Positions 101 through 16,025 of a stretch of 64,000 bases of DNA are shown in pieces. The stretch lies in sequence record NC_042116.1; one strand, 5' to 3'. A program made the position numbers and the translations under genes. Each line of letters begins with the position of its first letter. The stretch's first letter is position 1. The notes under the pieces are model-generated. The model saw only the letters and a program-made list of their open reading frames with translations, made no database searches and was not told the DNA's origin.

Positions 101-282
101 AAACCGATTTTAGTCTCGATTTTCCATTAGTTCCCCTTCCGCGTCTAGAAAGTTCTAGGCAGAATCGAAAGTCGTCTTTTCGTGTTGACAGAGCTATATT
201 ATCAAATGGGGTTAATGATTGCAAGGACTTTTTTCAATAAAAATAAATTTGACATCTGATTATATAATGTAGTACTATAGTA

Positions 283-332
283 TCAATCCAGCGAAATGGA
301 CTAACCCTATAGGGTGCCGAGATCCGCCTATT
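283..332 (+). ncRNA. Two-hairpin element E1 (candidate small RNA)
   Basis: tcca-GCGAAA-tgga ctaa accc-tata-gggt; behind TTGACA(249)-18-TACTAT(273). Confidence 0.55.
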
Positions 333-364
333 AATATATAAAAGCGAATGAGAATCATTACTAA

Positions 365-413
365 TTATAGTTATATTCCCGCACCCTCTAGGGTATCCGA
401 TTTCTCTCGTCTG
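365..413 (-). ncRNA. Two-hairpin element E2
   Basis: Minus strand cga-GAGAAA-tcg, accc-taga-gggt; promoter TTGTAT(447-442)-17-TATTAT(424-419). Confidence 0.5.
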
Positions 414-658
414 AAATAATAATATCAAAGTACCGAATAGAATACAAGGATTATTTTTGATTTTTATGAAAATAGTTCAAATCGATTTATACGTATAAAG
501 GAAAGGATTTAAAAGGCGTACAAAAAAGCGGGGTGAATGTATAGCAGTACTATAGAAACGCCGTGTAATGGTTCCTATGCATTGTGGTGGTATGAATACG
601 CATATAAAGGAAAGAAACTTATATAAGGAAAGTATTTGCAATGAATGAAAGAAAGTAC

Positions 659-686
659 TTGCAAAGGTTTAAGGTTATGATACTAT
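659..686 (+). promoter_or_regulatory. sigma70 promoter with extended -10
   Basis: TTGCAA-16-TGn-TACTAT, A-rich upstream, AGTACT overlapping the -35. Confidence 0.7.
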
Positions 687-706
687 CTATTTCGCCAACA
701 AGGAAA

Positions 707-718
707 CGCTCTTTAACA
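707..718 (+). promoter_or_regulatory. boxA antitermination element
   Basis: CGCTCTTTAACA matches the rrn/lambdoid boxA consensus; about 15 nt after the predicted start site. Confidence 0.65.
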
Positions 719-788
719 ACTTACCGGATGATTACTTGATAGTGATTCTTTACTTTAGAAATAAAGAAAAAGAAAAACGATAAAGTAC

Positions 789-816
789 TTGACGGCAAGA
801 AAGGAAAGTGTAGAAT
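789..816 (+). promoter_or_regulatory. sigma70 promoter
   Basis: TTGACG-16-TAGAAT, AGTACT overlapping the -35. Confidence 0.7.
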
Positions 817-820
817 GTTG

Positions 821-969
821 GTTATCGAAAGGCGGTCAGGTTCGCCGTATGATAGGTAAGGGTAACAGGGCAGAATACAGTACTGTTACAGAGTAGCCAG
901 AAGTGCTACTACAGCCTTATAAAAAGCTAACTAACAGTTAGTGACCTATTTACCGCCTAACGATATAAC
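821..969 (+). ncRNA. Candidate ~150-nt multibranch structured RNA
   Basis: Nested helices 821-827/961-969, 830-836/952-958, 852-857/944-949, 858-861/915-918, 862-868/883-889, 893-897/905-909, 927-932/936-941; starts at the predicted start site; no ORF. Confidence 0.55.
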
Positions 970-1001
970 GAAAAAAGTTTCTAAGAAGTTGAAAAAAGTA
1001 C

Positions 1002-1031
1002 TTGACTGATAGAAGCAAAACATAGTACGAT
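1002..1031 (+). promoter_or_regulatory. sigma70 promoter for the first gene
   Basis: TTGACT-18-TACGAT, AGTACT overlapping the -35. Confidence 0.6.
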
Positions 1032-1082
1032 GTATCCAAGCCAAACGGCTAATATAACCTAAACTTTTAAGAGGAATTACAA

Positions 1083-1736
1083 ATGACTACTACTAACACT
1101 GCAAAAGTATCTCGTGTAACTTTGAACTCAATCATTTTCGCCACTGCTCCAGTACTGGCAGCACCAGCCGAAGGTGAGACTCACAGTAAAGAAGTAATTG
1201 CACAACACAAATCGTCAATTGCTGAATTTGTATCAAATCAGGGTAAAGAGTTGGCTGGTTTTATTTTGGGTAAAGTTGAAACGCCTGATTTGATTATCGC
1301 GATTATCAAAGAAGCGGCGAAACAAATTCCAGCAGTACAAAAGCAACTGGCAGATGAAGCGGCAGTAATTGCACTTCAAGCAGAAGAACAGCGTGTTAAA
1401 GATGCTGAAGCGGCTGAATTGAAGCGGAAACAGGATGAAGCAGCATTGCAAGCTGAAAAAGACAAAATGCTTAAATTGTTAACTGACGGCGGTTTAGATT
1501 TGGCAATCGCTCAAACAATGGTAGCGGCTGGCCTTAAAGCAAAAGCTCCAGCTAATTCACCAAAAAACAGTTATGAGCGTGTCGCGGTAACCGTTGACGG
1601 TAAAGGCTACGATGTTCCAGTGCGGGGCAACATGAGCGAAGAATTGAAAGCTCTGGTAGCTAAAGATGGCGGGGATCGTGATGCATTTATCGCAAAATAC
1701 CGCAACGAACCAGCCGCACAAGAAGTTACTGAATAA
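1083..1736 (+). CDS. H-NS-like protein (divergent)
   Basis: RBS GAGGA; coiled coil then LLTDGGLD..AAGLKAK..PKNSY..G.....LK..V...G..RDAFIAK, paralleling the H-NS linker and C-terminal domain by eye. Confidence 0.55.
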   Translation: MTTTNTAKVSRVTLNSIIFATAPVLAAPAEGETHSKEVIAQHKSSIAEFVSNQGKELAGFILGKVETPDLIIAIIKEAAKQIPAVQKQLADEAAVIALQAEEQRVKDAEAAELKRKQDEAALQAEKDKMLKLLTDGGLDLAIAQTMVAAGLKAKAPANSPKNSYERVAVTVDGKGYDVPVRGNMSEELKALVAKDGGDRDAFIAKYRNEPAAQEVTE

Positions 1737-1884
1737 TATCTCAGTACTGTAATAATAGGGGGCAAACCAGCCCCCTAAGCCGTTCTAATAGTATTTTAAT
1801 ACTAACGTGTTATAGTACTATTAGAAACGCTTAAAAGTCTTTATAGAGCGTTTTATCTTATATCTTAAGTAAGGATAAACGCTT

Positions 1885-2154
1885 ATGCAATTAACCCCAA
1901 TATCTAATTTAATTGATAAAAATACTCGCATCGCTAAAACGATGACAGCCATTAGCAGAACAACATCGGTTTTTAATGGTTATCTTGCTTTTGTTGTTAA
2001 TGGTGAATTAGTACAACGTAGGATCTATGACATGGCATATAATAGTTTATATGATTCGTGTATGTATATAGTTCACAAGAAAGTTAATTATGCCGTTAAT
2101 CTTCCCTGTAAGCCTATTAGCGGAGCGTTTAACGCTGAATCACTAAAGGCATAA
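1885..2154 (+). CDS. Hypothetical early protein
   Basis: RBS AAGGA, followed by a terminator. Confidence 0.6.
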   Translation: MQLTPISNLIDKNTRIAKTMTAISRTTSVFNGYLAFVVNGELVQRRIYDMAYNSLYDSCMYIVHKKVNYAVNLPCKPISGAFNAESLKA

Positions 2155-2164
2155 GGTAACATAA

Positions 2165-2200
2165 AAAGCCCGTTAGAATAGCTCTGACGGGCTTTTTTTA
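2165..2200 (+). terminator. Rho-independent terminator
   Basis: gcccgttag/ctgacgggc stem followed by a T-tract. Confidence 0.8.
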
Positions 2201-2209
2201 TTTGTTGAA

Positions 2210-2242
2210 AGTACTTGTATTATAATCTCAGTACTGTATAGT
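2210..2242 (+). promoter_or_regulatory. Repeated early promoter cassette
   Basis: TTGTATTATAATCTCAGTACTGTA at 2215, 3477 and 4603; near-identical inverted copy at 3404-3432. Confidence 0.75.
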
Positions 2243-2276
2243 AACCGTTATCGAAACAACTGACGGACACAACAAA

Positions 2277-2939
2277 ATGAATGCATTTAAGTTAGAGCAG
2301 TATAGAATGACTTTGGAAGTACTGGAACAAATGAAAGATTGTTTAGACCGTGGCGAGACTTATACCACTGTTAAAGGCAAGCCGTTCAACGTTACAAGGC
2401 AATTCGGTATTTGCTGGCACGTGTACGCTCATACGCCTAACCAGAACGTGACAGGGATCGGCACTGACTTTATGTGTCCTGCTTTTGCTGATATGGGCTT
2501 AGATATAGCGTATCCGGTGGAGTGTCAAACAACTGGCAGCCGCGATCAAATGCGTCAGGCATTCAGTGTACAGCGTAACATGTATGACGACAACACGATC
2601 CACGGTGCAAACCGGATCAAGCTGGTGGATTCACTGATCCAGTACTACCGCGAAAAGATGGAAACGCCGATCACTGTTACCATGTATGAACATTATTACA
2701 ATCAAGCCTTGACAGAAATGAAAAGGCGTGATTCAGCTAATGAAGCCGTATGGGATGTTTTGGATTTTGAGAACAATCAGATCTGGCGTGAACTGGCGTT
2801 AAAGATTGTTGACGAAGATCCTACACTGTCAGAAGTGGATCACGCTGCTGGTATTAACTACCCTGATGATCTAACGTTGGAAAATGTAGTTACTACTAAC
2901 TTACAGGAACGAATCCGCGAAGCATTAGAAAAGTTATAA
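2277..2939 (+). CDS. Hypothetical early protein
   Basis: 220-aa ORF with its own promoter and RBS. Confidence 0.8.
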   Translation: MNAFKLEQYRMTLEVLEQMKDCLDRGETYTTVKGKPFNVTRQFGICWHVYAHTPNQNVTGIGTDFMCPAFADMGLDIAYPVECQTTGSRDQMRQAFSVQRNMYDDNTIHGANRIKLVDSLIQYYREKMETPITVTMYEHYYNQALTEMKRRDSANEAVWDVLDFENNQIWRELALKIVDEDPTLSEVDHAAGINYPDDLTLENVVTTNLQERIREALEKL

Positions 2940-2950
2940 TCTTTACAAAT

Positions 2951-2986
2951 AAGGGGTTGACGGTTCAATCCCTTTTATAGTACTAT
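2951..2986 (+). promoter_or_regulatory. Fused terminator-promoter cassette (also ~3246, 4481, 9137, 9751, 11188, 11595, 12111)
   Basis: GGGTTGAC-loop-GTTAACCC-TTTT type hairpin carries the -35; the -10 follows the T-tract. Confidence 0.8.
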
Positions 2987-3017
2987 GTAATCACACCAAA
3001 CGAAAGGGGTTACATAA

Positions 3018-3233
3018 ATGAGATTAAGTGAGATTAGAAAAGTACTGAAGGAACTTAACAAGCTGGCGAAAGAATCGGGGAACCTCGATCCAGATATTAA
3101 GTTTTGGAGTGATGATATGGACACTGATTTACTATTAGAACTTTGTCCTGCTGATGATCTCAGTGATTCAGTACTGAAAAGCGGTAATATTCAAATAAGA
3201 TTGAATGAAGTACTTAACCCAAAAGTTAGATAA
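3018..3233 (+). CDS. Hypothetical early protein
   Basis: Own promoter and RBS. Confidence 0.7.
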   Translation: MRLSEIRKVLKELNKLAKESGNLDPDIKFWSDDMDTDLLLELCPADDLSDSVLKSGNIQIRLNEVLNPKVR

Positions 3234-3285
3234 TCTTTACAATTGCGGGGGTTGACAGCCTCCGCTTTTTTATGGTACTATAATA

Positions 3286-3336
3286 TCAATCCAGAGAAAT
3301 GGACTAACCCTAGAGGGTGCCGAGATCCATCTATAG
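3286..3336 (+). ncRNA. Two-hairpin element E3
   Basis: tcca-GAGAAA-tgga, accc-taga-gggt; promoter TTGACA(3252)-18-TACTAT. Confidence 0.55.
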
Positions 3337-3349
3337 AAAATTTAGTCCT

Positions 3350-3398
3350 TAATAGATATAGTTCCGCACCCTCTAGGGTATCCAATTTCTCTTGTATA
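3350..3398 (-). ncRNA. Two-hairpin element E4
   Basis: caa-GAGAAA-ttg, accc-taga-gggt; promoter TTGTAA(3432-3427)-17-TACAAT(3409-3404). Confidence 0.5.
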
Positions 3399-3532
3399 TA
3401 AGTATTGTACAGTACTGAGATTATAATTACAAGGGGTAAACAGAAATAAAAATTAAAATTAAAACGAAAAAAGAACTTGTATTATAATCTCAGTACTGTA
3501 CAATTCTCTATATCGAAAACGGGAGAAATGAT

Positions 3533-3988
3533 ATGAATTCAAAACAGTTCCAAGATGCAACAAGAGAAACATTTTTAAAGTACTTTCCTCATGGTCACAT
3601 AAGCATTTCTATGTTGGCAATAGGTGGTGGTTGTAATATCTTTTGTGGCTTGATTGGAGACATTAATGATGTAGGTGGTAAGATCCGCATGAATGATCCT
3701 GTAACGGTACGGGCTTATATTCATGATAACTTTTCATTTAATGATGAAAGTACTGAATTGGAAAACGTTGTTATTGAGTTCGATGGTTCGTGGATCTCAG
3801 TACTGCCAGACAATCCGCATCATTATTGTCAATCCCACAAGGTGCCAAGTCGCAAGATTAACGCAGAACCTAAAAAGGCATTAAGTAATTTGGATAAGTA
3901 CTTTAAACGATTAAAGGACTGTGTAACAGAGCAAGCAGGATTAAATCGCATTATTCAGCAGGATAAGATCCCAGCGAAATATCTATAA
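3533..3988 (+). CDS. Hypothetical early protein
   Basis: Promoter and RBS GGGAG. Confidence 0.8.
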   Translation: MNSKQFQDATRETFLKYFPHGHISISMLAIGGGCNIFCGLIGDINDVGGKIRMNDPVTVRAYIHDNFSFNDESTELENVVIEFDGSWISVLPDNPHHYCQSHKVPSRKINAEPKKALSNLDKYFKRLKDCVTEQAGLNRIIQQDKIPAKYL

Positions 3989-4063
3989 TATATTGTCAAA
4001 AGTACTTGCATTGTATAAGCGAGTACTTTACAATAAGTTATCGTTAATTGAGAGGATTCGAAT

Positions 4064-4474
4064 ATGTTACATGTTAAAGGTTTTTCTGAGGGTGGTTATT
4101 GCTTTATGATTGGTGATAAGCCTGTTTCTGTTGTTGAAGCATTGCAGAAAAATGGTAAGAAATTTAACAAGAATACATTAAACGCTTTAAATAGAAATAA
4201 TCTTGCTAATGAAAGCGATCTTGTGTCATTTGAGTTACAAGTACAATCATTACATAAAGGATTAACACCTGAATATGTAATTCAAATTTTACGCAATGAA
4301 TATAATATTGATTTTAATAATGATTTTCATGAGTTAAGTTCTGCCAGCGTACTGGATTTATTAACAGTATATCATATTGCACAATATCGAGCACCCTCAC
4401 CATGTAATCGTGATGGTTCGCCAATGCGTTATTTTTACCAGTACTTACAACGCTTCATAGAAAAGAAAAAATAA
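4064..4474 (+). CDS. Hypothetical early protein
   Basis: Promoter and RBS GAGG. Confidence 0.75.
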   Translation: MLHVKGFSEGGYCFMIGDKPVSVVEALQKNGKKFNKNTLNALNRNNLANESDLVSFELQVQSLHKGLTPEYVIQILRNEYNIDFNNDFHELSSASVLDLLTVYHIAQYRAPSPCNRDGSPMRYFYQYLQRFIEKKK

Positions 4475-4520
4475 TCAAATAAGGGGTTGACTTCGGTTAA
4501 CCCTTTTTGCTATACTAATA

Positions 4521-4570
4521 TTACTCCAGAGAAATGGACTAACCTTATAAGGTGTATAAGTGTACCTATA
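4521..4570 (+). ncRNA. Two-hairpin element E5
   Basis: tcca-GAGAAA-tgga, acct-tata-aggt (compensatory change); promoter TTGACT(4487)-18-TATACT. Confidence 0.55.
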
Positions 4571-4662
4571 ATAAAATAATTAAAATTCATACAAAAAAGT
4601 ACTTGTATTATAATCTCAGTACTGTATAATTCTTTATATCGAAAACAAACGAGGGTTTTTAA

Positions 4663-5085
4663 ATGAGAACATGTAAAGAGTGTGGGAACAATTGCAACGT
4701 ATTATCTAATGGTGTTGTCCATCATTACAACGAGGATGATAAAATTGATTATGATCTAGATGGGGATCATGTTGCAATACCTGAATTATCTGATTCTGAA
4801 AACAACATGTTAAATCCAATTCTTCAAAGTACTTTTAATTTTAATGGTGATGTTCCTTGTATTAACTACGCCGCGAATGGTGGAGGTTATGAAACTTACC
4901 AGTACTTCATTTGTGCTGATGGTGGATGTTTAGGAATTGGAACAGTAATTAATGAGTTTCATAAAGTAAACTTTAATGATCCTGATGATAAACAATGGCA
5001 CATTGTAGGGGTTGACGTGAATTATGAAAATACTAATCTGATAGATGATCACACAGGGGATTATATACCAGTAGCATATAGTTAA
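4663..5085 (+). CDS. Hypothetical early protein with N-terminal CxxC
   Basis: Promoter and RBS. Confidence 0.75.
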   Translation: MRTCKECGNNCNVLSNGVVHHYNEDDKIDYDLDGDHVAIPELSDSENNMLNPILQSTFNFNGDVPCINYAANGGGYETYQYFICADGGCLGIGTVINEFHKVNFNDPDDKQWHIVGVDVNYENTNLIDDHTGDYIPVAYS

Positions 5086-5123
5086 CACTACAACGGGGAT
5101 CATTGATCCCCTTTTGAGGTTAT

Positions 5124-5384
5124 ATGAATTTGTTTTATAGTACTAGAAAATTAGTAGTTTCATTTGATTGTAATTCTGATAAAATACATTGTGTAATATA
5201 CAGAAAAGGAATTCCCCGTTCTGATAACTGGAAAGTACTACAATCCTATACAATCAAACGTAAAGGGTTTAAACAGTTAGATGACCGTACACAAAAGGCA
5301 TGTTTACGGCAAGTACTTAAAGCCATGCGTAACCGTATAACGCAAGCCTTACATGTTGCATTAACTACAAAAGATATTTTATAA
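5124..5384 (+). CDS. Hypothetical early protein
   Basis: RBS GAGG. Confidence 0.65.
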   Translation: MNLFYSTRKLVVSFDCNSDKIHCVIYRKGIPRSDNWKVLQSYTIKRKGFKQLDDRTQKACLRQVLKAMRNRITQALHVALTTKDIL

Positions 5385-5433
5385 TATAATGAAAAAGTAC
5401 TGGACAATGCTCCGGTACTTTGTTATAGTACTT

Positions 5434-5483
5434 ACATCGAAGAGAAATTCGAATAGCCCATAGGGTTCAGGGGTATATCTATT
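5434..5483 (+). ncRNA. Two-hairpin element E6
   Basis: tcgaa-GAGAAA-ttcga, gccc-ata-gggt (G-U pair); promoter TGGACA(5401)-17-TATAGT. Confidence 0.5.
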
Positions 5484-5570
5484 AAAAATAATTAAAATTA
5501 AAATGAAAAAGAACTTGCATTATATTATGGTTATGGTAATATATGTATATCGAAACGGGAGGTTAAAGAA

Positions 5571-5639
5571 ATGAAACTACGTTATCAATGGCTGTTGTTT
5601 GCTTTGTTTATCCTTATTACCTGCGTAAACTTTGATTAG
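5571..5639 (+). CDS. 22-aa hydrophobic peptide MKLRYQWLLFALFILITCVNFD
   Basis: First ORF after a promoter, RBS GGGAGG; below the ORF-track cutoff. Confidence 0.55.
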   Translation: MKLRYQWLLFALFILITCVNFD

Positions 5640-5649
5640 GGGTTATATT

Positions 5650-5991
5650 ATGATGATTGTTAATTTTGGTGATGATATCAATTTCAATAGTATTAAGCAT
5701 ATTATTGAAAATAGTCAATCTGTATCTATTACTTTATGTTCTGGCGATGGTGATGATTTTACGGTGATAGAGCGTGAAAGAAGTAAATTTGCTGGTTTTC
5801 ATGAGGCTGATCTTATTGTTATTAGTACTGTACGGAATGCTAATGGTGATGGTATCTATGTATATCCTGAATACTTCACTATTGAACAGGCAGACACTGC
5901 TATTGAAGCCTTAAAAATAAGGGCGAGTGATACTAACATTAAATCATCTGAATTATCGGATTCATTAACTGATTTATTAGAATCGGAATAA
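5650..5991 (+). CDS. Hypothetical early protein
   Basis: ORF track, start trimmed to the RBS. Confidence 0.7.
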   Translation: MMIVNFGDDINFNSIKHIIENSQSVSITLCSGDGDDFTVIERERSKFAGFHEADLIVISTVRNANGDGIYVYPEYFTIEQADTAIEALKIRASDTNIKSSELSDSLTDLLESE

Positions 5992-6056
5992 CATATTAAA
6001 AGTACTTGCATTATATTAGCGAGTACTTTATAATAAGTTATCAAGTGAGGTACACA

Positions 6057-6104
6057 ATGAAATGGTTAATTATAGCAGTACTGATTTACATTATCTTTTT
6101 TTAA
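6057..6104 (+). CDS. 15-aa hydrophobic peptide MKWLIIAVLIYIIFF
   Basis: First ORF after a promoter, RBS GAGG. Confidence 0.45.
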   Translation: MKWLIIAVLIYIIFF

Positions 6105-6123
6105 TCAAGAGGAAGTATTAAAA

Positions 6124-6333
6124 ATGGCACATAAAGATCGTCGTTACAATGTTAACCCTGAATTTACCGGACACGAATCAGGCAAGAAACAATTTGTTAT
6201 TCGTTTTTGTGGTGATTTTGTTTCTTCGCATTCAAAGCGTGATGAAGCAGAAAAAGAGATCGCCCGATGGAAAAGTACTGGAACCGTTCCACATATCGGA
6301 AAGCAATGGGATAATCTAGTTGAACCTGTTTAA
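6124..6333 (+). CDS. Hypothetical early protein
   Basis: RBS GAGG, terminator downstream. Confidence 0.7.
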   Translation: MAHKDRRYNVNPEFTGHESGKKQFVIRFCGDFVSSHSKRDEAEKEIARWKSTGTVPHIGKQWDNLVEPV

Positions 6334-6395
6334 TTAATCAATATTAATAGTACTGGATATTTCACCAGTACTGTTTTTTTATACAGCATAATATA

Positions 6396-6446
6396 TAATA
6401 GATACATTTTCGCACCCTGTGGGTCAAAGACATTTCGCTGTCTATG
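6396..6446 (-). ncRNA. Two-hairpin element E7
   Basis: gaca-GCGAAA-tgtc, accc-aca-gggt; promoter TTGACA(6480-6475)-17-TATTAT(6457-6452). Confidence 0.55.
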
Positions 6447-6568
6447 AAGTAATAATACAGTATTTTGATATACGTGTCAAGGATTAAATTAAAATTAAAA
6501 CAAAAGAAAGTACTTGCATTAAGTATGAAGTACTGTATAATCTTTTATATCGAAACGGGAGAATTAAA

Positions 6569-6835
6569 ATGAGTAACGCATTGAAAGCCATGATTTCGTT
6601 GGTAATTTCAGTACTGATAACCTTTATAATATTAACTGCGGCGAGAGATGATGTTCTGTGGCGGTTAACCATGTTAGGATATGAAATTGAAGATACATGG
6701 TATTCTTTTTTGACATATGGCCTTAATGGGATATATGCTATATTAATGGTAGGTTGTTTTTATATTTTGTTTTGTTTAATGTTTTATATTACAGGGGGCA
6801 GTAATGAGAGTACAACCAATCCAGCCAATCATTAA
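6569..6835 (+). CDS. Small membrane protein (2 TM)
   Basis: Two hydrophobic segments; promoter and RBS. Confidence 0.7.
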   Translation: MSNALKAMISLVISVLITFIILTAARDDVLWRLTMLGYEIEDTWYSFLTYGLNGIYAILMVGCFYILFCLMFYITGGSNESTTNPANH

Positions 6836-6974
6836 GTTAGCGAATAGTACGGTCAAGAATGAATATTCAAAAATTGTTGTTGACATTCCGTGTAGTACTG
6901 TGGTATCATTAGGTTCTTACAAATCGTGTGATTTGTATAATTCAATTTATAAACAATAAAAGGTAAATTTAAAT

Positions 6975-7832
6975 ATGGGTAAGTTCATTAGTTATGGTAT
7001 TCTTGCGATTATTGTATTCGTTGGCTTGGGTGCATTGTTTGGTTCGTGGTACACGGTTGATCAGCAAGATCGTGGGGTAGTACTAACGAATGGTAAAATT
7101 ACCAGTATTGCAGAACCTGGTTTGAACTGGAAAATGCCATTTATGGATTCTGTTGTACAAATTCCAGTCACTGGACAAAATAAAAGTTATTCGAATCTAA
7201 AAGCATATAGCCGAGATCAACAACCGGCAGATATGACTATTTCTGTATCATTCTCAGTCCCAGCGGCTAAGGTAGGGGAATTATATAGTACTTTTGGTGA
7301 TATTGACAATCTAACTACTCGTGTTATTGATCGTCAAGTACCACAAGCTGTTGAAAATGTTTTTGGTCAGTTTAATGCGATTTCAGCAGTACAAGATCGT
7401 AATAAGTTAGTTACTAACTTAAACATTGCAATTAAAAAGGCAATGGAAAACTACCCAGTAGTAATTGAGAGTGTACAGGTTGAAAACCTATCATTCAGTC
7501 CAGCATATGAAAAATCAATTGAAGAACGTATGCAAGCAGAGATCGCAGTTACAAAGCGTGAACAGGACTATGCACAGGCTAAAATTTCAGCATCTATCAC
7601 AGTTGCGAATGCACAAGCTGACGCTGATAGCCAGTTAGCAAAGGCAACGGCAGCAGCTAAAGCAACACGCCTACAGGGTGAAGCTGATGCAGCAGCAATT
7701 AAGGCGAAGTCCGAAGCACTAAACAATAATCCACAACTTGTACAGTTGGCGGCGGTGGATAAATGGGATGGTGTACTACCTACTCAAATGGTTCCATCTG
7801 CTACAGTGCCGTTTGTGAATCTAAACAAATAA
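6975..7832 (+). CDS. SPFH/band-7 (prohibitin-like) membrane protein
   Basis: N-terminal TM, YTVDQQDRGVV..GK, EPGLNWKMPF, coiled-coil tail, KWDGVLP. Confidence 0.9.
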   Translation: MGKFISYGILAIIVFVGLGALFGSWYTVDQQDRGVVLTNGKITSIAEPGLNWKMPFMDSVVQIPVTGQNKSYSNLKAYSRDQQPADMTISVSFSVPAAKVGELYSTFGDIDNLTTRVIDRQVPQAVENVFGQFNAISAVQDRNKLVTNLNIAIKKAMENYPVVIESVQVENLSFSPAYEKSIEERMQAEIAVTKREQDYAQAKISASITVANAQADADSQLAKATAAAKATRLQGEADAAAIKAKSEALNNNPQLVQLAAVDKWDGVLPTQMVPSATVPFVNLNK

Positions 7833-7842
7833 GTACTATCAC

Positions 7843-7871
7843 AAAAAGCCTCGCATTGTCGAGGCTTTTTA
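7843..7871 (+). terminator. Rho-independent terminator
   Basis: gcctcg/cgaggc stem flanked by A- and T-tracts. Confidence 0.75.
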
Positions 7872-7964
7872 TTATCTGAATAATTAAAATTAAAACGTAA
7901 AAAGTACTTGCATTGCATGAGCGAGTACTTTATAATACTTACATCAACCACAAGAGGCAACAAC

Positions 7965-8321
7965 ATGAAAACTGAATTTTTCGCGACAAGAACACTGGCA
8001 CGTAACGCGGTAGAAGCTCTTAATGGTAAGTTTAAAGATTTTGGTAAAGATGCTCCTACTGGTGAACGTTGGGGGGTGCTGGTGGATGAAGTACTACCAG
8101 TACAAAAGGAACAACCTGTACTTGCAGAAGAAAAAAGTAATCTTGACGTACACCTTGATTTTCTTAGTACTGTAGCAGAAGATGCAGCAAAAGCATTGAA
8201 TCAGCCAACTGGCATTCGTGGGGAACAAACGTTAACAACACCAAATAAGAAGCCTGTACGGGTTATGTGGCGTCGTTCAATTGTGGCGGTACGTTTGTCG
8301 GCACTACTGGCAAAATCGTAA
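7965..8321 (+). CDS. Hypothetical early protein
   Basis: RBS GAGG at the trimmed start. Confidence 0.75.
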   Translation: MKTEFFATRTLARNAVEALNGKFKDFGKDAPTGERWGVLVDEVLPVQKEQPVLAEEKSNLDVHLDFLSTVAEDAAKALNQPTGIRGEQTLTTPNKKPVRVMWRRSIVAVRLSALLAKS

Positions 8322-8370
8322 CACAAACCAGTGGGGGCGGTATAATGCCCCCTTTATTAATCGAGATCAT

Positions 8371-8613
8371 ATGAAAAAAGTTAAAGTTGATAATACACAA
8401 TTACGCATACATTTCAAGGCACAAACAAAAGTACTTGATAAGGCTATTCGTATTGTGAAAGATTATAATAATGGAAGTGTTAGAGCTAGACGGTTAGGGT
8501 GTGGTTTATTTTCAGTAATAGATGTATCACATAACGAACGGATCGTTATTAAAAATAAAACACTTAATTTAATGACTCATGAACAATATAATAAATTCGT
8601 CGAACGACGTTGA
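8371..8613 (+). CDS. ParE/RelE-like small protein
   Basis: Basic 80 aa; pattern RR......S.DV....RIV.....LMTHEQYN recalls the plasmid/ICE ParE-like family. Confidence 0.4.
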   Translation: MKKVKVDNTQLRIHFKAQTKVLDKAIRIVKDYNNGSVRARRLGCGLFSVIDVSHNERIVIKNKTLNLMTHEQYNKFVERR

Positions 8614-8669
8614 CATAATCCCCTAAATATGTATAATAATAATTATACACGATTAGGGGATTTTTTATT

Positions 8670-9131
8670 ATGCCTGATAAATTTAAACATAAGAATGGTG
8701 CTACTATAGCAGGTCATGCCGATAAGTGGAGTGATGAAAATCGTTCAAGTACTAGCCATGATGCAGGTCAAGGCAGTAAAGGAAGTAGAAATCAAGGTAC
8801 AGGAATTAAAGGTAAACAAAACGCAATGCCATCACAAGGTATTGATACATCCAAAATGGATAAGTCCGAAAAATTAAAGTACTTTAATTCATTGGGTTTA
8901 CTTCAACCAAAACAAGAATTATCTATTAAAACATGGCCTGAAACATTACGCAAAGTGTTTAAAGATGAACCTGTATACATTAAAGATATTACTACAGCGA
9001 TAAAATCTATTGAACCAGCAAGATATCAACAAGCCATTCAATCAGCATTCAATGCTTATAACGAAATTACAAAACAATCAGATGATGTTTATGATATATA
9101 TGCCGCAATTATGCAAGCATTACAAGGTTAA
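8670..9131 (+). CDS. Hypothetical protein
   Basis: TTGACA-17-TATAAT promoter upstream. Confidence 0.65.
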   Translation: MPDKFKHKNGATIAGHADKWSDENRSSTSHDAGQGSKGSRNQGTGIKGKQNAMPSQGIDTSKMDKSEKLKYFNSLGLLQPKQELSIKTWPETLRKVFKDEPVYIKDITTAIKSIEPARYQQAIQSAFNAYNEITKQSDDVYDIYAAIMQALQG

Positions 9132-9197
9132 AAATAAGGGTTGACTTAGGTTAACCCTTTTGCTATTGTATCAGTACACAAACATAAGGAATATATT

Positions 9198-9548
9198 ATG
9201 AAAAAGTTATTATTACTCGCTGCATTGTTTAGTACTACAGTTTCAGCTCAAACATTTACATGTGATAACTTTACTCTGTATCAAGGTATCGGGAATAATC
9301 AATACAGACAAGTAGATGATGCAGGTGTACAATCATCTTTGATTATTACTATTGAAAGTACTGAACCATTGATTACCGTTTCTGTACAAGGTGATAAAGA
9401 AGTAGTGCAATTCTGGAAAGATTATAATGTATACAGAAATGTAACTGGTGAAATTTCACAAGATGGTAATAATTTTATAATGAAAACAGCTATACAAGAT
9501 AGTACTGGATTTTATATACCTGTTAAAATTGAGTACCATTGTAAATGA
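9198..9548 (+). CDS. Exported protein with signal peptide
   Basis: MKKLLLLAALFSTTVSA signal sequence. Confidence 0.75.
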   Translation: MKKLLLLAALFSTTVSAQTFTCDNFTLYQGIGNNQYRQVDDAGVQSSLIITIESTEPLITVSVQGDKEVVQFWKDYNVYRNVTGEISQDGNNFIMKTAIQDSTGFYIPVKIEYHCK

Positions 9549-9742
9549 AATTATCATTTCAATTTATGCAAAAACGTGTACAGTACTTAAGTACTAAACT
9601 TAAAGCATCATTTGAATTACAATATACTATTAACCAGAATTATCATTTAATGAAGAATGGAAGATTCATTGTTATGGATCAACCGCTTGAAGTACTGGAA
9701 ATAGTAGTAAGTGCATTATTAAGTAATAACATTAAAAAATAA
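9545..9742 (+). CDS. Hypothetical protein
   Basis: 4-nt overlap with the upstream gene. Confidence 0.55.
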   Translation: MKLSFQFMQKRVQYLSTKLKASFELQYTINQNYHLMKNGRFIVMDQPLEVLEIVVSALLSNNIKK

Positions 9743-9787
9743 TTAAATCAAGGGTTGACAGATGTTAACCCTTTTTGCTATACTACT

Positions 9788-9838
9788 ATCAATCCAGCGA
9801 AATGGACTAACCCTATAGGGTGTATAGTTATGTCAGTA
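9788..9838 (+). ncRNA. Two-hairpin element E8
   Basis: tcca-GCGAAA-tgga, accc-tata-gggt; promoter TTGACA(9755)-18-TATACT. Confidence 0.55.
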
Positions 9839-9947
9839 CTTTTATTATATGCATAGAAAAAAGAATTTAAAATTAAAATGAAAAAGTACTTGTGTTAGAT
9901 GCTGGAACTGATAGAATGTAGTTATTGAAACAACGGGAGTAAATGAA

Positions 9948-10187
9948 ATGGCTAATAAAGAAGTGGAATTTAAAATTAGAAAATGGTCAGATACTAACGG
10001 TCGTCCATTTGATGTAGTGCTGGTGGATCATTTAAAGAACAATCAGCATTTTCAGCCTAATGTTGAATTTAGTACTATCGAACATGCTGAAAAGCATATG
10101 GAAACTTTGAATACTTTAATTCAAAATCATCCTGACCGTATCAACTTTATTCGTGACCATTGGCCTGTTGATGCTGGTATAGAATAA
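9948..10187 (+). CDS. Hypothetical early protein
   Basis: Promoter and RBS GGGAG. Confidence 0.7.
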   Translation: MANKEVEFKIRKWSDTNGRPFDVVLVDHLKNNQHFQPNVEFSTIEHAEKHMETLNTLIQNHPDRINFIRDHWPVDAGIE

Positions 10188-10270
10188 AAATTAAAACGTA
10201 AAAAGTACTTGACTATATCAGTTGAGTACTTTAAAATAGAATCTTAATTAACGCAATAGGAAACTAAATC

Positions 10271-11164
10271 ATGAAAATGTACAAAGGCATCGCAGGTAAA
10301 GCAATCAAAGAAAACCGTCCACTGCTAAGATCAGAACTGGAATTAGTTGTTCCATCTATCTTTTCAAGTACTGGTCACGAATCACGTTCAGCCCGTTTTG
10401 CACCTGTTGCAACCATCGACGTTGTAGACCGTTTAGCAAAAGAAGGTTATCAACCATTCTTTGCTATTCAGTCCAATGTACGTGACGAATCTAAACGCGA
10501 ATTCACTAAGCATATGCTGCGTTTCCGTCAACATGATGGCAAAACATCCGGCGAATCTAATGAGATCATTCTCGTTAACGCAAATGATGGAACAAGTGCA
10601 TACCAATTAATGGCTGGTCAATTCCGTTTCGTTTGTGCTAATGGTCTGGTTATGGGTAACATGCAACATAACACAAAAATCTATCACAAAGGTAACAATA
10701 TCATGGATGACGTGATCGAAGGCGTCTATTCAGTAGTGAAAGATTTTGATAACATTGAACGTTATAAAGATGAAATGCAACTAATACAACTCAATGATAT
10801 CGAACGTAAAACGTTTGCAACTGCTGGTTATCTCATGAAAGAGGGTATGCCGGAATCAGGTTCAATGGATGACTTTGTATATAATCCATTACAACTATTA
10901 TCACGTTCAGGTCTAAACAGTCAAGACCAGTACGATAATAGTTTGTATAGTACTTTTAATACTGTACAACAACACTTAATCAACGGTGGTCAACGCTCAT
11001 TCATGGAAGATCGTAATGGTCGTACTCGCCGCCGGTCAAGCCGTAGCGTTACTAATATCAATAAGAACATTGATATCAATAGTAACTTATGGCAACTCGC
11101 TACCGCTCTGGTAGAGAAGAATACTAAGGTAGTGCATGATATCGTTGATGCACAATTAGCATAA
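10271..11164 (+). CDS. DUF932-family protein (plasmid leading-region / cryptic-prophage type)
   Basis: PSIFS...HESRSARF....T..V...L..EGYQPFFAIQS..RD..KREFTKHMLRFR; IILVNANDGTSAYQLMAGQFRFVCANGLV. Confidence 0.85.
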   Translation: MKMYKGIAGKAIKENRPLLRSELELVVPSIFSSTGHESRSARFAPVATIDVVDRLAKEGYQPFFAIQSNVRDESKREFTKHMLRFRQHDGKTSGESNEIILVNANDGTSAYQLMAGQFRFVCANGLVMGNMQHNTKIYHKGNNIMDDVIEGVYSVVKDFDNIERYKDEMQLIQLNDIERKTFATAGYLMKEGMPESGSMDDFVYNPLQLLSRSGLNSQDQYDNSLYSTFNTVQQHLINGGQRSFMEDRNGRTRRRSSRSVTNINKNIDINSNLWQLATALVEKNTKVVHDIVDAQLA

Positions 11165-11252
11165 AAAATAAGTACTAAAATCATATAAGGGGTTGACTTA
11201 GGTTAACCCCTTTTGCTATACTTATTTTATCGAAACAAACGAGGGTTAGTAA

Positions 11253-11588
11253 ATGTTAGATGTATATGTAAGTTCTGATTTAGTTTCAAATGGTAGAAAT
11301 GAATTCGGTACTGAACAAGAAAAAACAGAGTACTACATCATTGCAGAATCTCTAAATGGTCAACGTATTAGATTAGATAGTGTGTCAGTTGTTAATAGAG
11401 AATACACTGATACACAATGTACTGAGTACTTAGAACGTGTAGTTACAAAGATTAAAAATCATTTAGCTGGTGGCGGTAAGTTGAATCAAGATTGTTGGTA
11501 CGAAATAGATCCTTGCTATGGTTCACAACGTTATATCGATTTGGATAGTACTGGTTACTTTTATCAACGTGAGAAACTCGAAGATTAA
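11253..11588 (+). CDS. Hypothetical early protein
   Basis: Promoter and RBS. Confidence 0.75.
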   Translation: MLDVYVSSDLVSNGRNEFGTEQEKTEYYIIAESLNGQRIRLDSVSVVNREYTDTQCTEYLERVVTKIKNHLAGGGKLNQDCWYEIDPCYGSQRYIDLDSTGYFYQREKLED

Positions 11589-11659
11589 TAATAATGGGGT
11601 TGACTATAGTTAGCCCCTTTTGTTATAATTCTTATACACCATCACGAAAGGAAAGAAAC

Positions 11660-11857
11660 ATGACCAGAGAAGAAAGAATTGAAGCCGCTCATAAAGTACT
11701 GTCATACAAACATCTTGAAATGATGGAAGCTATGGAAAGAGTACTAGGCACGTTTGGCGAAGAAAATAAAGATAAATTCGCCGCCGTATATGATGAAGTT
11801 GAAAACATTCTTTATCCGCATGGTGCGGGTGAAGATGCAGTATACTGCGAAAATTAA
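11660..11857 (+). CDS. Hypothetical early protein
   Basis: RBS AAGGA at the trimmed start. Confidence 0.65.
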   Translation: MTREERIEAAHKVLSYKHLEMMEAMERVLGTFGEENKDKFAAVYDEVENILYPHGAGEDAVYCEN

Positions 11858-11918
11858 TAATTGACAAACTCTGTCAGTACTGATATACTGGCAGAATATT
11901 AAATCAGAGGATACAATC

Positions 11919-12101
11919 ATGGTTCAAGTAGATATGACTGAATTGCGGAAACGTTGGTATGATCTGGCACGTTCAGGTACTGCTATCACTGGTGATAATA
12001 GAACGCTTTTCAATACACTTGATGGCTGGCAACGTCAAGAATTAAAAAATGCATATCTTAAAGGTATGACAGATGAAGTGCAAGCATGGGATGAAGCATA
12101 A
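11919..12101 (+). CDS. Hypothetical early protein
   Basis: Promoter and RBS GAGGA. Confidence 0.65.
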   Translation: MVQVDMTELRKRWYDLARSGTAITGDNRTLFNTLDGWQRQELKNAYLKGMTDEVQAWDEA

Positions 12102-12147
12102 TTAAAAATAAAGGCTTGACTTAGGTTAAGCCTTTTGCTATAGTACT

Positions 12148-12198
12148 ATCAATGCAGCGAAATGCACTAACCCTATAGGGTGCGGAGCTATGTCTGTA
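12148..12198 (+). ncRNA. Two-hairpin element E9
   Basis: tgca-GCGAAA-tgca (compensatory change), accc-tata-gggt; promoter TTGACT(12116)-17-TATAGT. Confidence 0.55.
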
Positions 12199-12288
12199 AA
12201 AGATATTAAAATTCAAATGAAAAGTACTTGACCTATATAGCTGGTGGATGATATATTATTAGTACTGGATGCAACCGAGGGCAATACT

Positions 12289-12561
12289 ATGAAAGTTACT
12301 ACACTGATTAAAAAGTTGTTTGGTCAAGACGCAATCGCTGATTATATGGAAGTACTGGAAGAAGATGAAAAACAATCAGTACTCCAGTACTATACAATTC
12401 AATCAGATGAAGATGCAAGTGAACCAGATTACTTTGTTAAGTTATGGCAGGATGGATTGTATACTGTCAAAAACATTAACGGTGAAGTTATCGTGAATAC
12501 ATATAATGTAAGATTACTAAAAGAAAAGTTAAAAGTACTTGCAAACAATCATAAGGTTTAG
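12289..12561 (+). CDS. Hypothetical early protein
   Basis: RBS GAGG at the trimmed start. Confidence 0.65.
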   Translation: MKVTTLIKKLFGQDAIADYMEVLEEDEKQSVLQYYTIQSDEDASEPDYFVKLWQDGLYTVKNINGEVIVNTYNVRLLKEKLKVLANNHKV

Positions 12562-12626
12562 TATTATATATACATCGAACGGGGACAGGGAACATAATGT
12601 TACCGCCTGATTCGGGAGATTCAATC

Positions 12627-13076
12627 ATGAGCGACTTAACTACTTCCCTGCTTTCACTGGCTAAAAACAACGGCGGCAACTTCAAATCAGAAAAGCAATC
12701 TGCTATGTTTAATAGTCTGGCAAGTAATGGTGTGTTAGTTCTCGCTGGTGGATCTGTATATGGTAACACATGGTCATATGAGTTTATCATTGATAGTACT
12801 GGTGTTGTATCAGTCAATAAACTATCTTATAGCAAAGCTGGTGTTGCCAGTACTGAAGCTATGTTCTCACGCGATGGTACTGTTCAGGCTGACCGTAAAG
12901 TTGCACAGGATGATAAGAATACTAAACGTATCAAGCGTGAGATTAAAGGGCTTGAGAAACGTATCAAGCAACGTCAAGCAGAGTATGATGCTGGTCAGTA
13001 TCCCGATGCTGAAATGTTTAATAAAGCTCAGAGAGAAGATAGAGATAATTTGGAAGAGTACCAAGCAATGTTATAA
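12627..13076 (+). CDS. Hypothetical early protein with C-terminal coiled coil
   Basis: RBS GGAG at the trimmed start. Confidence 0.75.
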   Translation: MSDLTTSLLSLAKNNGGNFKSEKQSAMFNSLASNGVLVLAGGSVYGNTWSYEFIIDSTGVVSVNKLSYSKAGVASTEAMFSRDGTVQADRKVAQDDKNTKRIKREIKGLEKRIKQRQAEYDAGQYPDAEMFNKAQREDRDNLEEYQAML

Positions 13077-13141
13077 AGTACTTGACATTTATTAAAGCCA
13101 CTGTCATAATGTCGGTGGCTTAGTCTATTGAGGAATAGCAT

Positions 13142-13342
13142 ATGTTTAATGTAGTAGGTTGTTTAGGGTGTACCATTGGTAGTGCAGCGTCAGTCGATGA
13201 AGCTATCACACTGGTACGTTCACAGGTGCCAGTAGGTAAGAAGAAGCAGAGCACCATGCGTAACGCTCTCTCTACGCTACGCCAAGGCCAGCAGTACCAT
13301 GTAGACTATGGTCATTCAGGGGTAACCGTAGAGCGGCTATAG
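13142..13342 (+). CDS. Hypothetical early protein
   Basis: TTGACA promoter and RBS GAGGA. Confidence 0.65.
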   Translation: MFNVVGCLGCTIGSAASVDEAITLVRSQVPVGKKKQSTMRNALSTLRQGQQYHVDYGHSGVTVERL

Positions 13343-13554
13343 GTAAGCTGTACGCTGTTATATGGCATTTTTAATTTAATTCAAAAAATATTTTATACAG
13401 AATAAAAGTACTTGACTTTTGAAATGAGTAAGGGATACCTTAACTTTTCTGTATAAAATATGTTTGGACTATGCAAAATTTTTTTGCTTACTAAAGGCCA
13501 GTAACGCTTAGCACCCCTATAATCGGGGTATATGTATTACAATAGGAGTAAACT

Positions 13555-14211
13555 GTGGAAGAACCACACACATTACATTTGATCTGGAATAGGCGTAGAA
13601 ATGAAGCTATGCGAAAATATCACGGTGATGGTATAGACAAACCCGTACTTAAACATATCTTCCATGATGTACACCAATCTGATTACTATACTGAATTATT
13701 ACACTACGGGTCACAATTAATTAATTTAAGTACTATTATTATGCCACAGGTATCAATAGTAACAAGTTGGTTCGGAACGATAGGACAGATGGAAATTCCA
13801 TTAGAAAATGAAGTTACTTTTAGCATATACACTGATGGAAATGATGATGCATTAATACTTTCAAAAAAAAGCAATAGAATTTTTCAGTTATTCTTGAGGT
13901 CTAAGAATGCTCATCAGCATGAAATAATGTACGGTAACAACTTCATTGGTAATGACCTAATAGTACTACAAGGTGAACATGTCAATTACGCAGTGAATGT
14001 TAATATAGATACCGAGTTATCAAAAGCAGTTAAAATGGAAACCAAGAAACTCCCAATACAATACAGTACTTCTATAATATATGGTATAACGAATGAACTA
14101 TTATTTTTATATCATATGGATCATATGGATGATACAAATGTGTATTTTAATTTTATACATAGTGCATTATCATCATTAACAATAGAATGCACAAGAAGAG
14201 GTTATATGTAA
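13555..14211 (+). CDS. Hypothetical protein, weak member of the FQxxT paralog array
   Basis: GTG start with AGGAG; LPIQYST variant of the motif. Confidence 0.7.
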   Translation: MEEPHTLHLIWNRRRNEAMRKYHGDGIDKPVLKHIFHDVHQSDYYTELLHYGSQLINLSTIIMPQVSIVTSWFGTIGQMEIPLENEVTFSIYTDGNDDALILSKKSNRIFQLFLRSKNAHQHEIMYGNNFIGNDLIVLQGEHVNYAVNVNIDTELSKAVKMETKKLPIQYSTSIIYGITNELLFLYHMDHMDDTNVYFNFIHSALSSLTIECTRRGYM

Positions 14212-16009: not shown

Positions 16010-16025
16010 AGAAATATTTAAAGTT

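Follow-up and report, generated by a model that had tools for sequence, protein, structure and literature searches.

Dam/GATC/SeqA sequestration acts at oriC and at the dnaA promoter; pairs of sites on the same helical face are read cooperatively, and site clusters at a promoter silence it after replication. SPO1 TF1 and phi29 p6 are abundant DNA-binding proteins of phages that cover the phage genome from nucleation points close to its ends, with repression of the early promoters, and they read base modification or DNA bendability rather than an exact hexamer. HIP1 (GCGATCGC) is the highly iterated palindrome of cyanobacteria (PMC5861425, PMC4390886). Researchers have also found that the binding site of SlmA, GTGAGTACTCAC, has an AGTACT core and that its G1, T2, A4 and G5 are required (PMC3020112), and that the early promoters of CBB are RpoD-like, with a TTGACA-type -35, a TATAAT -10 and an A-rich UP-like element (PMC5259590).

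The window, that is, the whole stretch of DNA analysed here, comprises bases 1-64000 of the Yersinia jumbo phage fHe-Yen9-04 (genome 354 kb). Across this genome AGTACT is the hexamer with the highest over-representation, with 1008 copies against 121 expected (8.3-fold over composition), and the 64-kb window holds 254 against 16.7 expected, in genes and spacers alike. The first-pass annotation had treated AGTACT as a word of the early promoters; it is found genome-wide instead, and most copies lie inside ORFs (about 883-884 of the 1008, against 206 ± 12 after synonymous shuffling). Ser-Thr dipeptides are encoded by AGT-ACT in 60% of cases against 15.5% expected, the enrichment is present in all three reading frames, and 71% of AGTACT sites are kept in position in phage BF, where other hexamers reach 34%. 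AGTACT is a word maintained by selection, and this selection acts at the DNA level. Genome-wide, its one-mismatch variants stay near 1-fold, and the flanks obey a single rule, G being avoided before the word and C after it, with no further preference; a sharp word with a weak flank rule is typical of symmetric recognition of restriction-enzyme grade. The density of AGTACT in the phage is about 40 times that in E. coli K-12.

This many-fold excess, both over composition and over codon-aware expectation, makes AGTACT a highly iterated palindrome, and like HIP1 it is a short palindrome far above chance that selection keeps inside genes. However, two cognate orphan methyltransferases are known for HIP1, a cellular 8-mer, whereas AGTACT is a viral 6-mer, and no co-occurring methyltransferase tracks AGTACT-richness. 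Unlike HIP1, AGTACT further occupies fixed registers in promoters and forms arrays with a 20-bp period. The excess is common to the whole enterobacterial crown clade of these jumbo phages, and the published accounts consulted for CBB, RaK2 and PA5oct, as well as a jumbo-phage overview, do not mention the word.

Between 1 and 14 kb of the window, 14 sigma-70-type promoters are predicted in which AGTACT is fused to the -35. At this first site (site 1) AGTACT and a TTGNNN -35 share one T, the final base of the word and the initial base of the -35, and a TAnnnT -10 follows 16-18 bp on; AGTACTTGAC occurs seven times in the window against 0.22 expected. At the level of sequence these are sigma-70 (RpoD) promoters, which lie upstream of genes and combine a TTGACA-like -35 with a TATAAT-like -10 across a spacer of 16-18 bp, and a separate consensus scan for sigma-70 promoters recovers those at 789, 1002, 10209, 12228 and 13082. 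They are the same promoters, in the same early/terminal region, as the RpoD-like promoters of CBB, but the account of the latter (PMC5259590) mentions neither AGTACT, nor the two registers, nor a genome-wide excess. The local AGTACT density around the early promoters is 5-10 sites per kb, and late-type TATAAATA promoters have AGTACT at no fixed position. The predicted features are as follows, where d is the distance between paired sites.

1..64000, no strand: AGTACT word, preferred form H-AGTACT-D, 254 copies against 16.7
654..686, + strand: site 1 only, AGTACT 654-659, -35 TTGCAA at 659, -10 TACTAT at 681; orthologous in BF, CBB and GAP32
784..816, + strand: site 1 only, AGTACT 784-789, -35 TTGACG, -10 TAGAAT; orthologous in BF, CBB and GAP32
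997..1031, + strand: site 1 only, AGTACT 997-1002, -35 TTGACT, -10 TACGAT; g001 starts 52 bp downstream
2210..2242, + strand: pair 2210 and 2230, d = 20, spacer 16, -10 TATAGT
3472..3510, + strand: degenerate site 1 (AGAACT), intact site 2 at 3492 adjoining -10 TACAAT
4001..4034, + strand: pair 4001 and 4022, d = 21, spacer 17, -10 TACAAT
4598..4630, + strand: pair 4598 and 4618, d = 20, spacer 16, -10 TATAAT
6001..6034, + strand: pair 6001 and 6022, d = 21, -10 TATAAT
6509..6541, + strand: pair 6509 and 6529, d = 20, -10 TATAAT; absent from the first-pass annotation
7903..7936, + strand: pair 7903 and 7924, d = 21, -10 TATAAT; absent from the first-pass annotation
9885..9917, + strand: site 1 only, AGTACT 9885, -35 TTGTGT, -10 TAGAAT
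10204..10237, + strand: pair 10204 and 10225, d = 21, -10 TAAAAT; BF version nearly identical
12223..12257, + strand: site 1 only, AGTACT 12223, -35 TTGACC, -10 TATATT
12534..12567, + strand: site 1 only, AGTACT 12534, -35 TTGCAA, -10 TATTAT
13077..13110, + strand: site 1 only, AGTACT 13077, -35 TTGACA, -10 CATAAT
13407..13416, + strand: AGTACTTGAC with no convincing -10 at 16-18 bp, extra to the 14 promoters

A second AGTACT (site 2) is present in seven of the predicted promoters, always 1 nt upstream of the -10, and in these window pairs d is 20 where the spacer is 16 bp long and 21 where it is 17 bp long. The positions from which the first-pass annotation had started (654, 784, 997, 2210/2230, 4001/4022, 4598/4618, 6001/6022 and 10204/10225) all carry AGTACT, and at each first site that it listed the palindrome does supply the first T of the -35; its five pairs are all real, but the total is seven, with 6509/6529 and 7903/7924 added. 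In the BF orthologues of the promoters at 4001 and 4598 both AGTACT sites are kept, and the intervening spacer has diverged.

The architecture was compared across 121 AGTACTTG-anchored predicted promoters from 7 related genomes. A second AGTACT occurs in 62 of the 121, and in 59 of these 62 it lies at d = 20 or 21, so that the second sites occupy 2 of about 12 possible registers, where about one per register would be expected at the local density; this two-register architecture is conserved across four genera. The spacing is thus constrained among relatives, which is the check that had been set for the supposed phasing, and the claim that the pair lies on the same face of the DNA, 20-21 bp apart, is borne out and holds in relatives.

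The gap between site 2 and the -10 is 1 nt in 51 of the 62 promoters, tighter than the link to site 1, and of the promoters with 17-bp spacers, 22 have d = 21 and 8 have d = 20. Because site 2 follows the -10 more than it follows site 1, part of the apparent phase is promoter geometry, and the pair spacing may be a by-product of two independent anchors. One explanation would accordingly be intrinsic to the promoters: genome-wide pressure for AGTACT would have filled free promoter positions, with copies that serve RNA polymerase or are neutral and have no operator role. An A-tract followed by AGTAC would approximate a proximal UP-element subsite, AGTAC-TG can give an extended -10, and the fixed registers would stem from promoter duplication. 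The tracking of the -10 by site 2 is in its favor, as are the 17-bp-spacer promoters of RaK2 and 121Q, in which the word closes with a TGn that abuts the -10, an extended -10. Site 2 is absent from about half of the promoters and has been gained and lost between genera with turnover among orthologous promoters, early promoters resemble paralogous modules with common upstream A-tracts, and the CBB paper calls these promoters RpoD-like with a UP-like element (PMC5259590). We nevertheless consider this explanation unlikely, as random placement in a 17-bp spacer would not put 59 of 62 second sites into 2 of 12 registers, and high-confidence orthologues retain both AGTACT copies even where the spacer separating them has diverged. 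Sister lineages also argue against it. There is no AGTACT excess in PA5oct or in the uncultured contigs L214 and L215, the promoters of all three are free of AGTACT, and those of PA5oct and L214 read TTGACA-17-TATAAT, with the same -35 and -10 and nothing at the AGTACT positions. These plain promoters in lineages without the excess indicate that the promoter sites and the genome-wide word arose together, and that RNA polymerase as such does not need the AGTACT sites.

A further argument against a purely promoter-bound origin comes from arrays with an exact 20-bp period outside promoters. An array of about 10 AGTACT sites is found in fHe-Yen9-04, one of 4 sites with diverged spacers in fHe-Yen9-03 and one of 3 sites in RaK2, which is consistent with a phased binder. 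When AGTACT pairs are counted by distance, the maximum lies at 20 in RaK2 (19 against about 2.5) and also in 121Q (9); against such a binder, within genes there is no enrichment of pairs 20-21 bp apart.

Our tentative proposal is that AGTACT may well be the operator-like recognition word of a putative sequence-specific DNA reader in the enterobacterial crown clade, probably a symmetric dimer, which these phages would use all along their DNA. The proposal starts from what is observed, namely, the word and the selection on it, the two conserved registers, the 20-bp arrays and the absence in sister lineages; from these we infer a protein that reads AGTACT, its joint binding of both promoter sites and the direction of its effect. 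Palindromic sites lie, as operators do, at fixed positions overlapping the core promoter: register 1, fused to the -35 of the host-type early promoters, would be centered at about -37.5, and register 2, 1 nt upstream of the -10, at about -16.5. With centers 20-21 bp apart, both sites lie on one helix face, which would be roughly opposite that contacted by sigma region 4 at the -35. The reader, once present, would bracket the -35 and the spacer through both sites, and the most likely effect is a joint switch-off of the whole early class; switching on is less likely because the hexamers are already near consensus and have A-rich upstream elements. The short 20-bp-period arrays just upstream of the early region could then act as cooperative loading sites.

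As for the reader, the proteins suggested by the first-pass annotation do not fit, since none is conserved clade-wide: g001 (1083-1736) is not conserved in RaK2 or 121Q, and of the two PF01555 methyltransferases, one is missing from RaK2 and 121Q and the other is found only in fHe-Yen9-04. Domain screens of about 55 conserved ORFs revealed no cognate DNA-binding protein, the screened conserved small basic proteins having no recognizable DNA-binding domain, which counts against the proposal, and no homologue of SPO1 TF1 or phi29 p6 was found in fHe-Yen9-04.

It has to be considered whether the word is methylated instead of bound. A phage methyltransferase would modify AGTACT, fully on injected DNA and by half or not at all on replicated DNA, and the methylation state would set early-promoter activity and mark phage DNA, as an orthogonal parallel to the Dam/GATC/SeqA system. 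Like GATC, AGTACT is a frequent palindrome of 4-6 bp spread through the genome, the density of GATC in E. coli is close to the one AGTACT per 350 bp of the phage, and methyltransferases and restriction enzymes typically target sharp 6-bp palindromes. RaK2 DNA was reported to be cut solely by methylation-insensitive enzymes (PMC3622015), and the Dam-like g050 (PF05869) is the one methyltransferase conserved in all five of the five relatives tested. However, g050 is a poor candidate for an AGTACT methyltransferase, as its homologues also occur in DNA without AGTACT excess, namely, in a T4-like contig (57% identity; AGTACT 5 against 4 expected) and in the syntenic sister contigs L214 and L215 (2 and 9 against 7 expected). 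The only clade-wide methyltransferase therefore does not track AGTACT-richness, the two PF01555 enzymes are not clade-wide, and no homologue of a C5 methyltransferase, D12 Dam, SeqA or MutH was found in the genome, which sets the phage apart from the Dam system and makes such a switch distinctly unlikely.

A host factor has also been considered, in which an Enterobacterales protein, either the nucleoid-occlusion factor SlmA or a nucleoid protein, reads AGTACT and is attracted or titrated by the phage. Only phages of Enterobacterales show the excess, which the Pseudomonas relative PA5oct lacks, and the SlmA site shares with the phage word its palindromic form and AGTACT core, its reader being a dimeric protein from hosts of that order (PMC3020112). 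Still, we see little chance for this explanation. The GT flanks that SlmA requires are avoided in the phage (SlmA-type flanks 10 and 17 times against 34 expected; GAGTACTC 4 times against about 26 expected from flank frequencies), which has no full SlmA site, so that SlmA is rejected as the reader, and in E. coli K-12 the H-AGTACT-D sites number only 280, with no two AGTACT copies about 20 bp apart that could serve as a native operator.

The phyletic pattern could also point to a topoisomerase, for which A^GTAC^T would be the preferred cleavage site with a 4-bp stagger, focusing decatenation and relaxation on the phage's own DNA. The dyad geometry of AGTACT is that of a type IIA cleavage site, and the AGTACT-rich clade conserves the two subunits of topoisomerase II (238613-240601 and 240656-242065), neither of which has a homologue in PA5oct, but 116 other genes show the same pattern. 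T4, with the same kind of enzyme, shows no such excess, with 29 AGTACT copies in its 169 kb, the fixed promoter registers are left unexplained, and type IIA enzymes are not known to read an exact hexamer; we regard this explanation as very improbable.

A second word has to be mentioned together with AGTACT. AGTACT-richness and the absence of GCGC are separable, and g057, the sole protein with a restriction-endonuclease fold, tracks the absence of GCGC rather than AGTACT-richness, and AGTACT thus does not qualify as a Type II restriction-modification target with a cognate endonuclease and a protecting methyltransferase; this separation and the link of g057 to GCGC-absence are new here. It is possible, though doubtful, that the two words form one system for telling self from host. 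AGTACT, about 40 times rarer in the host, would tag phage DNA for the putative reader, and the same reader would time early shut-off through the two same-face sites and the 20-bp loading arrays, whereas the phage nuclease with the restriction-enzyme fold would cut GCGC in host DNA, for which reason GCGC would be banned from the phage.

If the operator-like word does have a reader, the roughly 1,000 sites under selection in each genome of a whole clade of 350-kb phages would point to an undescribed DNA-recognition system, one that ties the timing of early transcription to the way phage DNA is handled globally. Such a system would also account for the ability of phages lacking modified bases to tell their own DNA from that of the host, and, if the reading with both AGTACT and GCGC is true, an unmodified phage genome would be told from its host by two words.

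In the first 14 kb of the window, we found 14 predicted promoters in which the final T of AGTACT is also the initial T of a TTGNNN -35 hexamer (site 1), with a TAnnnT -10 located 16-18 bp after the -35 and an A-tract upstream; one further AGTACTTGAC at 13407 has no clear -10. The window covers bases 1-64000 of the Yersinia phage fHe-Yen9-04 (Eneladusvirus; 354,378 bp, 31.6% G+C) and is 100% identical to LR596615.1; the phage's relatives are the jumbo myoviruses of the RaK2, 121Q, GAP32, CBB, and BF group. All AGTACT positions reported in the first-pass annotation were found, and its five AGTACT pairs are real, but the list was short, because 7 of the 14 promoters carry a second AGTACT just upstream of the -10 (site 2), which adds the pairs at 6509/6529 and 7903/7924. 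In all seven, a single nucleotide separates site 2 from the -10, and thus the distance between the sites (d) is 20 when the spacer is 16 bp and 21 when it is 17 bp. With the -10 placed at -12 to -7, site 1 spans about -40 to -35 and site 2 about -19 to -14. The TTGAC-type members were recovered independently by a generic consensus scan, and no fixed AGTACT accompanies the late-type TATAAATA promoters. These predicted promoters are termed early on the basis of their position and of the work on CBB (PMC5259590), whose early and terminal region was described as containing RpoD-like promoters with an UP-like element. A LexA box was rejected on reading the sequence, as half-sites are there with the wrong spacing. 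We tentatively favor, with somewhat less than even confidence, the reading that AGTACT in early promoters forms operator-like sites for a putative DNA-recognizing factor, the reader.

The observation was confirmed and extended from the 14 promoters and seven pairs to the relatives. Matches to AGTACTTG-N-AGTACT number 13 in BF, 20 in CBB (where the terminal repeat is present twice), 7 in GAP32, 17 in RaK2, and 5 in 121Q, and the reversed control pattern had 0 matches in these five genomes. When promoters in the early regions of seven genomes were anchored on AGTACTTG and the -10 only (n = 121), site 2 was present in 62, with d = 20 in 37, 21 in 22, 18 in 2, and 23 in 1; the gap from site 2 to the -10 was 1 nt in 51 of the 62 and 2 nt in 8. 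Among promoters with a 17-bp spacer, d was 21 in 22 and 20 in 8, indicating that site 2 tracks the -10 more than site 1. In RaK2 and 121Q, d keeps to 20 and the TG of the word yields an extended -10, and there are also variants in which site 1 is moved by 1-2 bp (d = 22) or is degenerate. Between close orthologues of fHe-Yen9-04 and BF, the inter-site spacer has diverged and both AGTACT are retained; across genera, site 2 has been gained and lost. The distribution of d and the orthologue comparison thus indicate that the 20-21 bp spacing proposed earlier is real and constrained in the relatives, although it is partly a by-product of the tie of each word to its own hexamer. Among the rival explanations, we consider a role intrinsic to the promoter unlikely.

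The first-pass annotation had treated AGTACT as specific to promoters, which did not hold, as the word is genome-wide and 883 of its 1008 copies lie inside ORFs. It is the top over-represented hexamer of fHe-Yen9-04 (121 expected), while its one-mismatch variants are near 1x and those keeping the GTAC core reach 1.5-2.4x. Ser-Thr and Val-Leu dipeptides are enriched in their own right, and AGT-ACT encodes 60% of Ser-Thr dipeptides vs 15.5% expected; nevertheless, codon or dipeptide bias was ruled out as the cause, because enrichment is seen in every reading frame and in the spacers, and because a synonymous codon shuffle within genes does not account for the excess (206 ± 12 vs 884 observed). 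Repair-driven drift to AGTACT was not supported, as transition neighbors are not depleted, and an even-spacing constraint was ruled out by near-exponential gaps (coefficient of variation 0.87-0.94). The flanks carry little information, with G before and C after avoided and C/G favored. Between fHe-Yen9-04 and BF (80% identity overall), AGTACT is kept in place in 71% of cases vs 34% for other hexamers, and the excess, at 903-1235 copies each, is shared by fHe-Yen9-03, BF, CBB, XbC2, Kaldavass, GAP32, RaK2, and 121Q. E. coli K-12 has 280 copies of the preferred flanked form H-AGTACT-D in its 4.64 Mb, a density about 40-fold below that of the phage. As an explanation of the word, a topoisomerase site is regarded as highly improbable. 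The + strand of the genome also has 13 copies of the Chi sequence GCTGGTGG vs 0.9 expected, and the - strand has 5; GGTACC and CGTACG are wholly absent.

The 20-bp phase is also found outside promoters. At the right end of the genome (353537-353712; locus L017, 1538-1703), a stretch that in a concatemer falls about 700 bp to the left of the window start, about 10 AGTACT follow an exact 20-bp period, in a 20-bp tandem unit that begins with AGTACT (8.3 copies by TRF). fHe-Yen9-03 has four AGTACT at this period with three different spacers, and in RaK2 three lie just before the early region. With one site every 350 bp, such a triple would be expected about 0.008 times in a genome. The distribution of pair distances has its peak at 20 in RaK2 (19 vs about 2.5) and in 121Q (9), and the genes of fHe-Yen9-04 show no enrichment of pairs 20-21 bp apart. 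A search of genome contigs for three AGTACT at a 20-bp period was uninformative, as its 106 matches were mostly ordinary tandem repeats from unrelated taxa. High-GC Gemmatimonadaceae MAG contigs (L104, L129, L154, L172, and others) have 8-10 AGTACT per 8 kb vs about 1 expected, so some bacteria may also have AGTACT as an iterated word.

The suggestion that a phased binder or methylation switches the early class is partly supported, in that it fits the geometry and the conservation; what failed, besides the promoter-specific framing, were its named candidates, the ORF at 1083-1736 (g001), for which RaK2 and 121Q have no conserved counterpart, and the two methyltransferases listed here.

PF01555 methyltransferases of fHe-Yen9-04 (genome coordinates)
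86906-87766: SPPY-type PF01555 methyltransferase, missing in RaK2 and 121Q
174935-175741: DPPY-type PF01555 methyltransferase, only in fHe-Yen9-04

The third methyltransferase of this phage, the Dam-like g050, is clade-wide, yet it is also present in two AGTACT-poor contigs, L214 and L215, and a T4-like contig in which AGTACT is at a normal level encodes a homologue with 57% identity. All four proteins were rejected or disfavored as readers by phyletic distribution, and SeqA, MutH, a C5 methyltransferase, and a D12 Dam are all absent from fHe-Yen9-04. A methylation switch at AGTACT is therefore quite unlikely, given that the named methyltransferases are not clade-wide and g050 also accompanies AGTACT-poor DNA. 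Reading by a host factor is very unlikely; the SlmA site does have an AGTACT core, with GT flanks required (PMC3020112), but SlmA was rejected because the full site occurs 0 times in the phage and its flanks are avoided, and E. coli K-12 has no AGTACT pair fit to be a native operator. As for a putative phage-encoded reader of operator-like sites, a TetR-like match proved to be an HTH-HNH endonuclease. fHe-Yen9-04, RaK2, and 121Q have 197 ORFs in common, and subtraction of those with a PA5oct homologue left 117 clade-specific core ORFs, too many to pick out the reader; domain screens of about 55 of these 117 gave no classical DNA-binding domain. The phage also encodes an IF3 homologue (genome 232434-232940), a DksA/TraR-type zinc finger (333795-334055), a TnsA-like nuclease (118637-119095), and both type II topoisomerase subunits (238613-242065).

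Other features of the window were observed as well. In a second promoter class (2957, 3252, 4487, 9140, 9755, 11193, and 12116), a TTGAC -35 lies within a terminator-like hairpin stem, in the layout GGGGTTGAC...GTTAACCCC followed by a T-run and TATACT; in some of them AGTACTAT serves as the -10 (TACTAT). Judged by this layout, they are predicted to be combined terminator-promoter modules. Directly after them, about 45 nt of conserved leader sequence (ATCAATCCAGCGAAATGGACTAACCCTATAGGGTG...; about 281-330, 3283-3330, 4520-4560, 9790-9830, and 12150-12190) form a candidate small-RNA family with 0 Rfam matches; the Rfam scan and the tRNA scan of the window were both empty. About 8 nt after the -10 of the AGTACT promoters, the predicted 5' leaders of many early transcripts share a conserved TATCGAAAC box (e.g., 4640 and 6550), which is present in BF, CBB, GAP32, and 121Q too. 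At 6346-6375, both stem arms of a terminator-like hairpin are CAGTACTG, so the AGTACT palindrome also forms RNA and DNA hairpins. The extreme left end of the record (1-100) has AGATGGATAGAC-like units in four direct repeats, which may be the sign of a physical end or of a packaging signal. The genes g013 and g014 (7965-8613) follow a paired AGTACT promoter and are conserved in RaK2 and 121Q; g014 has a ParE-like toxin domain and g013, upstream of it, encodes a basic protein, and the two look like a toxin-antitoxin-like pair.

A further protein, g057 (29726-30457; 243 aa, clade-restricted, no Pfam match), was predicted with high confidence (pLDDT 90.7) to have a type II restriction-endonuclease fold. 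Type II restriction endonucleases make up all eight of its best VIA-align matches (3ndh, Z 8.3; NhoI, HinP1I, MspI, SwaI, DpnI, NaeI, and SfiI), and Foldseek alone gave 0 matches. Every genome or contig carrying g057 has zero GCGC vs 10-295 expected, GCGC is normal in relatives without it, and the gene lies 1-5 kb downstream of g050 in all lineages. Since it tracks GCGC absence, g057 was rejected as the AGTACT reader. It is a reasonable hypothesis that g057 would be a GCGC-cutting nuclease against host DNA, to which the phage would be immune by lacking the site.

Sister lineages bear on the origin of the trait. The Pseudomonas relative PA5oct has 15 AGTACT vs 97 expected and normal GCGC, and its TTGACA-17-TATAAT promoters have nothing at either AGTACT register; T4 has 29 AGTACT in 169 kb. 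An AGTACT-poor, GCGC-free sister lineage is known here from the uncultured contigs L214 and L215, syntenic with 20-41 kb of the window, which have 2 and 9 AGTACT vs 7 expected and plain promoters; in L214, GTAC is even avoided. The syntenic contigs L020, L216, and L217 have 54-102 AGTACT, and AGT-ACT encodes 58-75% of Ser-Thr in AGTACT-rich contigs vs 1 of 23 in L214. This comparison indicates that the promoter sites and the genome-wide word arose together, in a clade already GCGC-free. As L214 and L215 are GCGC-free yet not AGTACT-rich, the two signatures are separable, and their lineage is the ideal comparator to find the AGTACT reader.
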